DNA of 64,000 nt, taken from Utricularia gibba (Eukaryota; Plantae; Magnoliophyta). The notes beneath the pieces were generated by a model. That model worked only from the letters and a program-made list of their open reading frames with translations, made no database searches and was not told the DNA's origin. The stretch is from NCBI GenBank assembly GCA_002189035.1, contig NEEC01000002.1, forward strand, positions 3,224,001 to 3,288,000. The letters run 5' to 3'. Position 1 is the stretch's first letter. Each line of letters starts with the position of its first letter. A program made the translations under genes and the position numbers. Positions 16,992 through 56,795 of the stretch are shown here, one piece after another.

Positions 16992-19924
16992 TATTGGAAA
17001 TTCTTATATGGGAGAAGAGCTAGGGATCCCACATTATTAGTTTAAATCCTCTTCAACTAATATATATAGGATACCAACCCATCATTCTTGATGGACTTGA
17101 GAATGAGCTAGGCCTTGCGTGTGTGCAATGTTCTAATTTATTATATTGGATTGGGTTTTTAAAGGGCCCCGAAACCCAAAAGACTATGCTTGTAGGGGGT
17201 GCAAGCCCATGTTTCGCCTCATTTTTGTATTGAACCTATTAGATTTAGATGTATATATTTGACTGATTTCTCAAACCGACATTGCGTTCTCGATGTGTGA
17301 TGCCCTTAATTAGTATACAATGCTAGAAAGAAAGAATGCATAATTCTTTGAACACATCTTTCTGCTAGCATAAAATCAACTAGATGGTAGTGATGAGACA
17401 CCTATCAATGAAACTGTTCAAACTAGTGAACTCTTGGAGGAATTGACTCTGAGATGAAGCAAAAAAAGATGATAGAGTCGAACTTAGTCAATGGGTTCTA
17501 TGTATATCTTACCAGTAAAGATCCTCTAACTTACCATGATACAATTACTTCCTTAGATGCTTTATTGTGTAATAGACCTACCCCCTAAGGCAAAGCAATT
17601 GAGAGCAAATGAATCTTTAAAAAAAAACTCATTGTAAATGATAAAGTAGAAAAATATAAGGCTTGACTAATAGCAAAATGTTTCACACAGAAATCGAATG
17701 TAACTAATTTGAGACATTTTCCCAAGTGGTTCACTTTTCTACCATACGAGTACTCTTTGTAATGACATATGTGCATAATTGGATAGTTCACCAAATGGAT
17801 GTCAAAATGGCATTCTTGAATGATGAATTGAAGTAAGAAATCTACATGTTTTAACATGAGGATTGTATAAAAGTTGGAGACGAACACAAAGTGTGTCGAC
17901 TGAAGAAGTCATGGTATGGCTTGAAACAAGTACCTAAATAAAGGCATGAAAAATTTGATGAAGTCATAACATCGTCAGGCTTCAAATCAAATCCAGTCGA
18001 AAAATGTGTTTATTCTAAAAATTTTTAAGATCAATGTGTGATCATAACCTTTTTATGTAGATGATATATTGAACTTTGGACCAAACCTAGACACTGTACT
18101 AGAAGCCAATAAATTCTTAACCTCAAAATTTGAGATGAAGGACATGGATGAAGTTAGCTACGTATTGGAAATCAAAATCATGAGAAATGAAAAAGAGTTT
18201 CTCTTAACTCAAAGTCATTATACCGAGAAACTTTCAGAAAAGTTTGATTTTCATGATGTAAAACCAATTAGAACTATGTATGATCTTAGTATTAACTTAA
18301 AGAAAAATAGAGTTGACCTTGCATTTTAGAGTGAATATGCTTAGATAATAGAAAGTGTGATATATCTAATAAATCATACCTGACTAGACATAACGTATGC
18401 CATTAATAGATTGAGTAGATACACACACAATCCAAATGAAAGCCATTGGATACCTGTGAAGTGGTTATTGAGATACCTCAAGGAATTGCTGACTATAACA
18501 TTCAATATCATAGAGAACCTGATGTATTGGAGGGATACAATGATACTAGTTGGGTATCAGAGATATAAGAATTAAAGGCCACAAGTGGAATAACTGTTAC
18601 ATTGAGAAGAGAAGTTGCGTGAAATCCACAAAACAAACTTTGAGAACTAGGTCAACAATGGAAGTAGAGATCATTGCATTAGATCTAGCAAAAATTGAGG
18701 TCAATTACTTGAGAAACTATGTGATGAGAATCTCACTCAAGCAACATGGATCTTTCCCAATGGTGCTGTATTGTAATTATCAAGCAGCAATTGTCACGAT
18801 CAAGAATCAATCGTATAATGGAAGAAATTACACATGCGATTGAGGCATGAAACATTGAAACAGTTGTTAAAAACTGGTGTGGTATTCGTTGAATTTGTGA
18901 GAAGATTTGTGAGCTTTCAAGGGGAATGGAACCACTAAGCAAGCGATAGTAATGGTAACCCAACCTGTGAGAAGAGAAACACTTTGATTAGGTTCATGAG
19001 TAATAACAAGTCATTGTTAGTTCTTAGAACACAACTCTAGGCAAGTGGTTGTTACTATGTAATATGTGTTCTATCTACAAATTGAGAGATGAATATTCGT
19101 TCTTAATGTCTCTATAGTTGATAAAATCAATAACACATATAAATAGAGTGTATTAAGTAGAGACACCTATATATATATGAAGGGTAGCCACTCATATAAA
19201 ATATATGTGATCTATAGAGCACTTATGAATCAACAAAAGCTACATGGGGCTTATGGTTGCACTTGAGCGTTAAAACAATCGACAATTATAAAAGTGGGCT
19301 TGATGTGATTGACTATATATCTGTATCCCAAAATAGTATTTAATTCATAAAAATACAACTTTATCGTCTACTTAGTAATACATGTGTAGTGCAATTAAGA
19401 AATTGGTTCATAATTGAAAGATATTATTTGTTAGATATTAGAATTTGCATGACTTAGTCCTCTTACAATATGTGGGGGATTGTTAGAAATTATCGTATTG
19501 GAGAAGAGGTATGGATCCCATATTGCTAGTTGAAGTCTTCTTCAATTAATTTACATGAGATACCAACTCATTAGTTTTGATAAACTTGAGAATACGTTGA
19601 GCCTTGCGTGCATGTAGGATTCTAACTTATTATATCAGATTGGATTTTCGGAAGGCCTCAAAACCCAAAAGGTTACATGCATACGAGAGGTGCAAAACCA
19701 ATCCCAAAAGTCTTTCGTGTGTGTGCAAGACAAACCCACATTTTGCCTAATTTTCGTCTCAAATCCATTAGAGTTAGATATATATATATATATTCGATTG
19801 ATTTCTAAGATTGAGATTGTATTCTTGAAGAGCTTTTTAAATCTTAAGGGATTGAGAGATCTTTTAGAACATCATATACTTGAGGTTTTGATCATTTTTT
19901 ATTCTTGATGTTAGATTTATAACA
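16992..19924 (+). mobile_element. Internally deleted, decayed Ty1/Copia element
   Basis: Diverged LTR-like direct repeats at about 16992-17290 and 19481-19924 (TGTTA...TAACA). PPT TGTGGGGGAT directly precedes 19481. The interior has an integrase tail (FFEHIF), RT (KYKA.LIAKCFTQ, HQMDVKMAFLN, SKFEMKDMDE) and RNase H (KQT...STMEVEIIAL), all with many stops. Confidence 0.85.
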
Positions 19925-53078: not shown

Positions 53079-53527
53079 AAAATAAATTGGATTAGGCACT
53101 AAAAACATGCCTAAAGAACTAACAAAAAATTATTTGAAGGTGACTCGATTTCTTTATTAATCCTTTTTTCCTTTTTTTTTGAGTTTTAGTGATCTTTTGG
53201 TTGATCATAATGTAAAGAAAACACAATTAGGATGGAAATCTTGGTATGTTTGTGATTCAAAACCTAAATCATGATAATGGTATTAGCAATATACATGATT
53301 TTTTAATATTTATAAAATACCTTAATTTTGAAATAATTTACAAATTATATTTCAATTATATTTTATATTTTTAATAAAAATATTAATATTATTTCATAAT
53401 TAAAATTTATCATTTAATTTTATTTCAAAATATGCTCCAATTTCAAAACCACAAACTCATTTTTTATATGTTTTAATTTTTAAATCAAAACATATTCCAA
53501 ATCAGGTCACATCACCCAAACCTTTAA

Positions 53528-54272
53528 GATCATGTTTGTTAGGTGGGTATAAATTATTAGGGTTTAGATTATTATAGTTTAATTAATCACATGAATGATG
53601 GTTTATTCAAAATAATGTGTTTGATGAATATGTTACAATTATTTAGGATTAGCAACTTTATATATTTGTTAAAGATGTTTAAAAATGGATATTTGTAAAC
53701 AAATATTACAAATAGACACTCCAATCGTACTATTACGGTGCCCAAGTATAGAAGACTTAATGTGTTTAGACCCCACAAAGTTGGGTTTGCGGTGTATGAA
53801 ACCTATTAACCCACTCTTTATGGGAGCCAAAGGAATGACACAATATGCTTCACAAAGTGTTAATAAGTAATGAATAACTTAAATAAGTTTTCACCCAATC
53901 AATCGACCAAAATATGAACAAGATATAAAGATATAAAATGAAAAATCAATACAAATAACTGGAATGAAAACAAGAACAAAAACTTACATGAAAACATAAT
54001 TTTTATTGAAATTTCAAAATTAAACCCACTTATCTTGAATTTACACCAATGATTTACAATCAATCTAGTAAACAATGAAGAAGATGATAACGATTTAAGA
54101 TTTTATTTGATATTGGAGAAGAGTAATAATATCTTTCGAATGTTAGTTTATGAATGATTTAATAAAACCCATCTAAATTATTATAGATAGATTTGTAATG
54201 AGATAATATAATACTATGATTTAACTTTTACACATGGATTTAAAGTCTTAAACATACCTAACAAACATGACC
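53528..54272. mobile_element. Tourist/PIF-like MITE (745 bp)
   Basis: TIRs GATCATGTTTGTTAGG / CCTAACAAACATGACC (15/16), with TAA TSD on both sides. Confidence 0.85.
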
Positions 54273-54481
54273 TAAATTATATTAAATATGGGTAGGATTT
54301 ATTTAACCATTAGTTAATTTAAGTCTTTTTTAAAAAAATTACGTCAGACTATTTGATGATTAAATAACCCATCTTCCAAAACAAAAGAGAAATCTAAATT
54401 GGGGTGATCACACTATTTTCAAGAGACCGGCCATCCCTCCTATTTCTCAAATGAGTCTAAATTAAAGTTCCCGTACATGAG

Positions 54482-54559
54482 GCAGCGTCAGGATATCAAT
54501 AAGCTAAAGTGCCTCATCGGCCATCTGGCCTCAAACAAATTAACCTCATCATTCTCTGC
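54482..54559 (-). ncRNA. Box C/D snoRNA with a guide against the 5' region of 25S rRNA
   Basis: Minus strand: GCAG-aga-ATGATGA (C) ... TTGA (D') GGCCA/TGGCC stem, GATGA (C') ... GCTTATTGATATc-CTGA (D)-cg-CTGC (terminal stem). The guide is complementary to 25S AUAUCAAUAAGC, the ITS4 primer site. Confidence 0.82.
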
Positions 54560-54674
54560 ACTTCAAACAGAATCAATCTTGGAAGAAGAAGAGCAACAAG
54601 AAACAATCAGGTTAAGGCTTAGACCTGTGCTTGCTTTCAACGAGATTAGGAATGTGGGGGACGGAAGCGTCGAC

Positions 54675-54748
54675 AAGATCAGTTAGAGCTAATACATATT
54701 TAACAGCCATCATACTTGGCTATCAAACAAGGATTAACATCATCTCAG
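54675..54748 (-). ncRNA. Box C/D snoRNA, U44/SNORD44 (plant snoR18)-type, copy 1
   Basis: C box variant ATGATGT (54737-54743), D' TTGA, C' ATGATG, guide ATGTATTAGCTCTA, D box CTGA (54679-54682). The guide is complementary to 18S UAGAGCUAAUAC(G/A)U. Confidence 0.82.
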
Positions 54749-54861
54749 TGTCTCCGCTACCCTTATTGCATTCTTTGGGAAGAAGGTTTTTTTTTTTTTC
54801 AGTCAAAAGCCTTTGAAAACGACGACGACGACGCCGGAGATGTGGGATATGAAGCTTGTGG

Positions 54862-54934
54862 AAAATCAGCTAGAGCTAATACATGTTGTAAGCCATCATC
54901 TTTGGCTGTCAAACAAGATACTTCATCATCTCAA
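54862..54934 (-). ncRNA. Box C/D snoRNA, U44/SNORD44 (plant snoR18)-type, copy 2
   Basis: Canonical C box ATGATGA (54923-54929), D' TTGA, C' ATGATG, guide CATGTATTAGCTCTA, D box CTGA (54866-54869). Confidence 0.85.
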
Positions 54935-55059
54935 ACTAACATACCCACATACCGGCTAAAAATCGAAACACGAAACGGAAAGGATGAGTTGGAGGAGGAG
55001 ATTCCACGAAGGCCGTCTCTGGAGAACGGCGGATGCAACAGAGAAATACTGTGAAATGA

Positions 55060-55200
55060 GAGCTAGGGCAAAGGTATTAATTTGTACGCCCAATTTGCAT
55101 GGGCCGGGCTACGGAAAAGAGGTGTAAAAGCCCAATGGAAACAAATCGGGTGGCGTGATCGGACCGAATCAACCCGAACCGGATACAAACCCTCTCGTCT
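55060..55200 (-). promoter_or_regulatory. Putative promoter of the snoRNA cluster
   Basis: Clustered site II elements (GCCCA at 55088, TGGGCC at 55100, AGCCCA at 55129) and degenerate telo-box-like motifs, upstream of a pyrimidine-rich leader. This resembles known plant snoRNA and ribosome-biogenesis promoters. Confidence 0.55.
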
Positions 55201-55478
55201 TTTATAATTTATTATTATTAAATCACCTATTTTCAAATATAGTAAGTAGACTTAATCTGAAAAAGGAAAGAAAAGAAACTGCTTCTTCAGCGTAAACATA
55301 TCACAAAATGAACCAACCCATAAGATTGGAATCAGGTACCAAGCCAGATTCTGGATGTTGCGTTGGACGAGGCTTCTTGGTGTTTGGACAAGAGGTGGTG
55401 GACTGAATGAATTTTCTGTAAACCTTTTCATGGATGATGAAGAGCGGGCAAGCACGGCGGCGGCGGCGTCGTTGATTC

Positions 55479-56795
55479 TCAGGACTCGCTTCCGTGAATC
55501 TTCTTCTGCACCCACGACGGCGAGAGCACAGGGCTTATCTTGACCTCCGAGGGGTTCCCCAGCCCCACCGAACAATCATTTTCATCGCCTTCGTTGTCCC
55601 TCACCCTGACTCTCCAAACCTTGAGCGTCTGATCCACACTCGCACTGTACACCAACAGACTCCTCACCATATCCACCACCCCTGCCGTCGTCTCCATCGC
55701 CGCCGCCAGACACTTCACCGGCCCGTGGTGCCCGTCGATCACTACGAGGCAGGCATGAAACGCGTTCCCGTCATCCCGCTTCCATATCCGAATCGTCGAA
55801 TCCTCGGATCCGCTCAGAATCATCTCCTCGACTGTGACCAAACAGAGGACCGAAAAATGGTGCCCTTGTAAGAACCCTGCGTGATTGTATCGCCCTGAAT
55901 TCTTCTCCTTCTCCCAGAAATTGATCAGCCCGTCTGAGGATCCGGAGTAGAGAAAGTGAGAGGAATTGCTGCAGCTGAGAGCGAGGGCATTGACAGGGGA
56001 AGGCTGGAATTTCAAGGTCATTGTGAGAATATGAGGGAACTCACGCATCACCCTCCTCCAGATTTTGACAGTTCCATCTGAGGAGCAGGTGAAAACGCAT
56101 CCATCGAACTGGTTCAGGACGATGGCGTTGACATTCCCATCGTGAGCGACGAAGGAGTCGACGCAGGCTTTCTCCATCAGCTTCCACACTTTGACGGAGT
56201 GATCCCACGACCCTGTGTACAGCAATTTCTCCACGCTGTTGATGGCCAAACAGGACACCCAATCCTTGTGCTGGTTCGAATTCTTCGGATTCGAAAAGAA
56301 GGATCTTCTTTTGGGGAGAGTCATAATCTTCCTCGGCTTCAACTTCAAGTTGTTCAGTCTTTCCATGTTGGTGATATCCCACAACCGGACTCTAAAATCG
56401 CCGTGCGCGGTGGCCAGGCTCCGCCCCGTGGCCAGAATGGCACGAATTTGCCCTGAGGGAGTCTTGAAACTGCCTGATTCCGTACAAGTAGGCTGCCCCC
56501 AGGCTTGAACTTTGCAGCTACTCGACCCGGTGAAGATGTAGTCTTTATTCACCGCCAGACATGAGATACTGGTGTCGCTCCAGTGGAGTGAGGCTAGGCA
56601 GTGGTATGGAAGCGGGCGTGGCCGCGACGGCGACGTGTTCCCCGGCGCCGGAGACCTCGTCCAAGGCGGGAAACCAGAGGCGGATGAGACGCAGGACGTC
56701 CTGGCGGAAGAGAGCTGCGATTCGGGTTCCCTGTTGATCTCGAAGGAGAATCTCCTGCCTGGTGCGAAGTTCATGCCTCTGCCGTCGCCGTCCAT
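55479..56795 (-). CDS. Intronless WD40-repeat protein (JINGUBANG-like)
   Basis: Single ORF with repeated GH/H...WD-type units (HKDWVSCLA...LYTGSWDHSVKVW, AHDGNVNAI...FTCSSDGTVKIW, GHHFSVLCL...SGSEDSTIRIW) and a C-terminal VLSPSWV motif. The start is taken at MDGDG; an in-frame extension to 56906 exists. Confidence 0.9.
   Translation of the reverse strand: MDGDGRGMNFAPGRRFSFEINREPESQLSSARTSCVSSASGFPPWTRSPAPGNTSPSRPRPLPYHCLASLHWSDTSISCLAVNKDYIFTGSSSCKVQAWGQPTCTESGSFKTPSGQIRAILATGRSLATAHGDFRVRLWDITNMERLNNLKLKPRKIMTLPKRRSFFSNPKNSNQHKDWVSCLAINSVEKLLYTGSWDHSVKVWKLMEKACVDSFVAHDGNVNAIVLNQFDGCVFTCSSDGTVKIWRRVMREFPHILTMTLKFQPSPVNALALSCSNSSHFLYSGSSDGLINFWEKEKNSGRYNHAGFLQGHHFSVLCLVTVEEMILSGSEDSTIRIWKRDDGNAFHACLVVIDGHHGPVKCLAAAMETTAGVVDMVRSLLVYSASVDQTLKVWRVRVRDNEGDENDCSVGLGNPSEVKISPVLSPSWVQKKIHGSES

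Follow-up and report, generated by a model that had tools for sequence, protein, structure and literature searches.

Two described families of plant box C/D snoRNAs, snoR18 and snoR120, provide the closest comparison for the locus reported here. snoR18 is listed with the few families conserved across land plants (PMC5122169). In Arabidopsis, A162 of the 18S rRNA is methylated and the site is assigned to SnoR18; the human equivalent is Am166. AtsnoR18a/b are assigned two sites, Am2935_25S and Am162_18S. Tomato and tobacco share Am162 with Arabidopsis; of the three species, only Arabidopsis has a mapped Am2935. The D' spacers of sorghum and barley snoR18, as given in a supplement (PMC5122169), are those of the consensus of Rfam family RF00359 (snoZ102_R77), with the D' element present. 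Z102 of rice, R77 of Arabidopsis and snoR18 are therefore names of one family.

Methylation of 25S U44 belongs to a different guide. Um44 is mapped and conserved in Arabidopsis, tomato and tobacco, with RiboMeth-seq scores of about 0.78-0.93, and is not listed for human or yeast. Its Arabidopsis guide is snoR120 (At5gCDbox125.1, 'TAIRsnoRNA36'), an RNA of 72-74 nt with a 12-bp D guide. Kim et al. (2010) found no snoR120 orthologue outside Arabidopsis.

Both families occur in clusters. In rice, snoR18b is the last member of the cluster U15a-U15b-snoR7b-snoR18b and does not lie beside a Um44 guide; the Arabidopsis counterpart of this cluster is U15a-U15b-snoR7.1. The partner of Arabidopsis snoR120 is an orphan, snoR133 (101 nt). 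Plant snoRNA clusters are for the most part independent polycistrons (PMC4660826). In plants, polycistronic snoRNA genes and genes for ribosomal proteins have promoters marked by Site II together with a Telo-box. By the TeloSII definition, the Telo-box (AAACCCTA) and Site II (TGGGCY) are both located upstream of a TATA box (PMC4660826).

Overall organization of the cluster

Reading of the minus strand revealed three box C/D units in the window, the whole 64-kb stretch of DNA that was analyzed. They are named U1, U2 and U3 in 5' to 3' order (Table 1). Each unit contains a C box near its 5' end and a D box near its 3' end, closed by a short terminal stem, and the sequence immediately ahead of the D box is complementary to rRNA. 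This is the layout of a box C/D snoRNA. The terminal stems are 4 bp long in all three units. In U1 the stem is GAGA/TTTC with one G-U pair; the stems of U2 and U3 were taken from the motif scan. Each unit has 12-15 nt of rRNA complementarity beside its D box, with the target at the fifth paired position. In all three units, 2'-O-methylation is predicted on this fifth nucleotide. The 18S pairing was read from the Rfam consensus, published site assignments and the general plant 18S sequence.

The original prediction had proposed three minus-strand box C/D units, two with an 18S guide and one with a 25S guide, in a stretch that otherwise holds junk plus-strand ORFs. This description was borne out: the boxes, the stems and the in-register guides could all be read. 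Just three ORFs lie over the cluster. They are on the plus strand, overlap one another and measure 61-112 aa. These ORFs are noise.

The box motifs taken alone are weak evidence. The motif scan of the window gave five pairs of a C and a D box that can form a terminal stem of 4 bp or longer, compared to 1.9 +/- 1.6 in shuffled sequences. The guide strings of U1, U2 and U3 occur at only three places in the window, and NCTGA follows each of them. About 500 CTGA sites are expected in a window of this size. With this number and the 111 mapped Nm that PMC8053127 reports for Arabidopsis, the number of in-register guides expected by chance is ~0.003 for a 12-mer and ~0.0002 for a 14-mer. Judged from the sequence, chance does not explain three units of this kind on one strand within 450 nt, and the guides decide this.

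The three units are arranged in tandem with a period of 186-191 nt. U1 and U2, which are 186-187 nt apart by this measure, are 78-79% identical and share an identical 13-nt guide core. The D' boxes of all three units are degenerate (TTGA), and the spacers between the C and D' boxes are short, 10 nt in U1 and U2 and 10-11 nt overall. The units are therefore effectively single-guide RNAs. No convincing fourth or decayed unit is present upstream, downstream or in the spacers; the best candidate, at 54339-54225, aligns to U2 with a z of 2.4.

Table 1. Coordinates of the three units, their elements and the neighboring features. Positions are those of the window.
Feature	Position	Strand	Description
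U1	54933-54860	-	snoR18 / Z102-R77-type box C/D unit, 15-nt D guide, predicted target 18S Am162
U1 C box	54929-54923	-	ATGATGA
U1 D'-like box	54912-54909	-	TTGA
U1 C' box	54899-54893	-	ATGATGG
U1 guide	54884-54870	-	15 nt, D+5 nucleotide T54874
U1 D box	54869-54866	-	CTGA
Spacer 1	54752-54859	-	108 nt, (CGT)n run then A13 run at 54799-54787
U2	54751-54673	-	second snoR18 / Z102-R77-type unit, 14-nt D guide, predicted target 18S Am162
U2 C box	54743-54737	-	ATGATGT (variant)
U2 D'-like box	54726-54723	-	TTGA
U2 C' box	54713-54707	-	ATGATGG
U2 guide	54697-54684	-	14 nt, D+5 nucleotide T54687
U2 D box	54682-54679	-	CTGA
Spacer 2	54560-54672	-	113 nt
U3	54559-54482	-	box C/D unit, 12-nt D guide, predicted target 25S Um44
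U3 C box	54552-54546	-	ATGATGA
U3 D'-like box	54534-54531	-	TTGA
U3 hairpin	54530-54519	-	GGCC/GGCC
U3 C'-like box	54519-54513	-	CGATGAG
U3 guide	54504-54493	-	12 nt, D+5 nucleotide A54496
U3 D box	54491-54488	-	CTGA
U3 terminal stem	54559-54556 + 54485-54482	-	GCAG + CTGC
Site II elements, two	55100..55134	-	TGGGCY, motif scan
WD40-repeat ORF	56906-55479	-	intronless, 475 aa, ends ~0.5 kb upstream of the cluster

The U1 and U2 units

At gathering thresholds, Rfam gave no match anywhere in the 64-kb window. In a permissive scan of the whole window, the two best matches were U1 and U2, both to RF00359. U1 scored 34.4 bits (E 0.0018 on 801 nt and 0.15 on 64 kb) and U2 32.0 bits (E 0.0065 and 0.52, respectively), where the gathering threshold is 40. 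An Rfam comparison had been put forward as a check in the original prediction; it gave sub-threshold matches for two of the three units and none for U3. The same scan produced a weak match to the mir-568 precursor family at 19141-19232 on the plus strand (29.6 bits against a gathering threshold of 75, E 0.75), which is probably due to chance.

The alignments of U1 and U2 to RF00359 run end to end (model positions 1-88), interrupted by a gap of 12 nt in the D' spacer, and the scores fall below the gathering threshold because these 12 nt are missing. The D guide and D box of both units align column for column with the consensus, with posterior '*', placing the guide for 18S Am162 in the register of the family. 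The internal GCC/GGC stem around C' and the order of the boxes are also kept. The conserved D' antisense element of RF00359 (..TTTCCCTATTGGTT.. before TGA), however, is absent from both units; the 12 nt that they lack include the conserved CCCTATTGG element. Given the sub-threshold scores, we class U1 and U2 as shortened relatives of the family and not as curated members.

The nucleotide singled out in the original prediction as the 18S target corresponds to a mapped plant site, 18S Am162, assigned to AtsnoR18. Its human equivalent, Am166, is the SNORD44 site, and human SNORD44 is the functional counterpart of plant snoR18. Since RF00359 itself carries the guide found in U1 and U2, the 18S site is no unexplored 'SNORD44' surprise.

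Unlike Arabidopsis snoR18a/b, U1 and U2 cannot reach the second target, 25S Am2935. We infer from the aligned sequences that they are probably single-guide versions of snoR18 that are devoid of the D' element for this site. Such units would be compatible with a lineage that does not use Am2935, or with the presence of a full-length snoR18 in another part of the genome. The lack of the D' element in a snoR18-type guide also agrees with the absence of Am2935 methylation outside Arabidopsis.

The shortening of U1 and U2 could also be a sign of decay. The cluster would then be a degenerating duplicate with one or more pseudogene units that have lost expression or the ability to assemble into snoRNPs, and full-length snoR18 and snoR120 elsewhere would do the work. 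The scores below the Rfam threshold, the loss from the D' spacer, the variant C box of U2, the TTGA D' boxes and the lack of an upstream Telo-box and TATA box (see below) are in line with this reading. However, none of the three D boxes is damaged, the C boxes have kept their GA cores, and the terminal stems are present. Each guide runs without a break over 12-15 nt and matches a mapped site in exact register. The guide core has stayed identical between U1 and U2 while the units as a whole diverged, as is expected under selection, and the element that was lost serves a site not mapped outside Arabidopsis. Decay is very unlikely.

Single-sequence folding gave stability z values of -4.3 for U2 (unusually stable), -2.2 for U3 and -0.2 for U1. 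In U2 (54671-54753, minus strand) and U3 (54478-54562, minus strand), the region between C and D' is predicted to pair with sequence 5' of the D guide and extending into it. The predicted pairing would give a long internal helix enclosing the GCC/GGC hairpin. These folds were kept out of the evidence, being uninformative for U1 and competing with the k-turn in U2 and U3.

The U3 unit

From its C box through its D box, U3 measures 65 nt; the stem brings it to 78 nt. It matched no Rfam family, even at E values up to 10. A text match in the literature identified its guide as the 12-nt core of primer ITS4, a sequence that appears in more than 5,000 papers. ITS4 corresponds to the 5' end of the large-subunit rRNA, read as the reverse complement. 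A54496, the fifth nucleotide from the D box, pairs with the bracketed U in ..GCAUA[U]CAAU.., which is U44 of 25S in Arabidopsis numbering. The 25S U named in the original prediction is thus also a mapped plant site, Um44, and its assigned guide is SnoR120 (At5gCDbox125.1).

U3 carries a single 12-bp D guide for 25S Um44 in an RNA close to the 72-74 nt of snoR120. Both are of the box C/D type and both are located in an intergenic cluster. Their partners differ: snoR133 in Arabidopsis, snoR18-type units here. The likeness concerns target, guide length and size. From its guide, U3 is predicted to have the role that snoR120 has in Arabidopsis. It is a candidate Um44 guide outside Arabidopsis, where the 2010 search found no orthologous guides.

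We also looked for the U3 guide followed by a D box in other sequence collections. At least 120 metagenome loci contain this combination. Among the loci listed, which are mostly on prokaryote-like contigs, there is no C box spaced as in a snoRNA and no likeness to U3, and they are therefore chance matches. Some of the matching contigs carry 'human gut metagenome' labels; none of them was regarded as human DNA. In bacterial and archaeal genomes, 20 sites fit the pattern of C box, gap, guide and D box; all are bacterial, and we attribute them to chance. Monocot entries named 'snoR120' in PMC5122169 have a guide that differs, and they appear to be another RNA.

Possible origin of U3

Sequence comparison indicated that U3 is similar to its neighbor U2 beyond the boxes. 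U3 with its flanks (54564-54455) aligns over its full length with U2 and its flanks (54756-54640), with z values of 5.4-6.1 in three scoring schemes. Of 2000 dinucleotide shuffles, 0-2 gave a score as high, as did one of 3000 shuffles in which the C and D boxes of U3 were held fixed. The similarity between U3 and U1 is weaker (z 2.9-3.9). A comparison of the 5' half only gives a z of 2.3-2.8.

In the best alignment, the D box CTGA of U2 is opposite a TTGA within the U3 guide. The D box of U3 is opposite a TCGA in the 3' flank of U2, and a shared CGCT-CC follows. Strings outside the boxes are found at matching offsets in the two units, namely TTAAT, TTGTTTGA, GCCA, GATGGC and TTAGCT, and GACGCT-CC in the flank. 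MAFFT places the 5' half of U3 differently, so the residue-level alignment with the moved D box is not unique.

The alignment of U3 with U2 suggests, as a hypothesis, that a tandem copy was retargeted by a moved D box. U3 would have started as a third tandem copy of a snoR18-type unit. Its old D box would have changed from CTGA to TTGA, and a new CTGA would have arisen from TCGA about 10 nt downstream. The end of the old guide, the former D box and the flank would together have become the 12-nt guide for 25S Um44, a plant-specific site.

Alternatively, U3 may be a plain snoR120 ortholog from an old and separate family, its likeness to U2 resulting from box constraints and chance. U3 and AtsnoR120 share target and guide length and are similar in size, and the modest U3-U1 similarity, the 5'-half test and the MAFFT placement are all compatible with an unrelated origin. 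However, the full-length U3-U2 score was almost never reached when the boxes were held. The common strings at equal offsets and the single period running through all three units also point to tandem copying. In addition, the failure of Kim et al. to find snoR120 anywhere outside Arabidopsis argues against an old separate family. An origin separate from the snoR18-type units is rather doubtful; orthology to snoR120 and descent from snoR18 do not exclude each other.

Tandem copying is the most likely source of U3. A further step would be to regard U3 as a stepwise record of how an Am162 guide gained Um44, which would mark either the birth of the snoR120 family itself or, by convergence, a second and independent appearance of a Um44 guide in this lineage. 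This is a tentative proposal, and we judge the chances to lie slightly against it. If confirmed in related genomes, U3 would be a clean, small example of retargeting through tandem duplication and a moved D box. If true, it would also help in thinking about how plant-specific methylation sites arise. How such RNAs work would stay as already known in either case. The apparent birth of a Um44 guide from a snoR18-type copy is the point that deserves a specialist's second look.

Spacers and proposed transcription of the cluster

The two spacers are similar in length but not in sequence (Table 1). Spacer 1 has no homology to U1, U2 or U3, and the short stretch common to both spacers, CTTCTTCC..AAGA..TG, is not significant (z 1.6). 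Within the cluster there is no run of five or more T; the first such run downstream is a T7 at 54338.

Two canonical Site II elements were found 170-205 nt upstream of the cluster, TGGGCT on the minus strand from 55134 and TGGGCC at 55100-55105 on the plus strand. Between this pair and U1 there is a TGGGCG variant. The two elements are the only Site II matches from 53500 to 56000. The background in the window is 0.55 matches per kb, and the pair is one of six pairs within 40 nt. The 500 nt upstream of the cluster contains no canonical Telo-box or TATA box, and no listed TATA variant is present between Site II and U1.

It is plausible that U1, U2 and U3 form one co-transcribed unit. They share a strand and short spacers (108 and 113 nt), are uninterrupted by T runs of five or more, and have the two Site II elements upstream. 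RNA polymerase II would start downstream of Site II (~55134-55100) and produce a single U1-U2-U3 precursor. Trimming by endo- and exonucleases would yield three RNAs of ~74-79 nt, with the C/D core proteins (SNU13/L7Ae-type, NOP56, NOP58 and fibrillarin) protecting each of them. U1 and U2 would then guide methylation of 18S A162, and U3 that of 25S U44.

The same snoRNAs could also be processed from a host, either the intron of a non-coding transcript or a read-through of the mRNA from the WD40-repeat ORF upstream. The best Pfam matches of this ORF are WD40 and WDR3/Prp19-type beta-propellers, which are below family cut-offs except for generic WD40. The ORF is on the same strand as the cluster and ends at 55479. 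A good 5' splice-site consensus, GGTATGT, is located 13 nt upstream of U1 (54952-54946, minus strand), and the missing TATA box is in line with a hosted cluster. However, the 1.5 kb after the cluster is AT-rich and shows no evident exon and no persuasive 3' splice site. U1 is separated from the WD40 stop codon by the Site II elements, and an AT-rich stretch with AATAAA at about 55220-55195, between the ORF and Site II, could end the WD40 mRNA before Site II is reached. Independent polycistrons are also the prevailing arrangement in plants. A host transcript is quite unlikely, and we infer that a single independent polycistronic gene is the most likely arrangement.

Overall, it is highly probable that the locus is an independent polycistronic minus-strand gene in which U1 and U2 are shortened snoR18-type units and U3 does the job of snoR120, having most likely arisen as a tandem copy.

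Comparison with described snoRNA genes

The novelty implied in the original prediction did not hold. The two target sites are mapped, and snoR18 (Z102/R77) and snoR120 are described plant families; both targets and both guide types were therefore already known. The combination of guides had been presented as unfamiliar. The order of the units does differ from that in described clusters, but reshuffled composition is normal in plants. The cluster is most likely an ordinary polycistronic plant snoRNA gene, and its arrangement alone differs from the Arabidopsis and rice clusters. What is gained for annotation is three snoRNA genes in a stretch that looks empty to an ORF view.

The cluster has several features in common with TeloSII polycistronic snoRNA genes. 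Its units are on the same strand, the spacers are about 100 nt, Site II elements are located upstream, and there is no protein-coding host. Unlike those genes, it has the Site II half of the promoter only. The sole Telo-box-like string between 52000 and 57000 is TAAACCCTAA, at 53560-53567 on the minus strand, about 900 nt downstream of the cluster.
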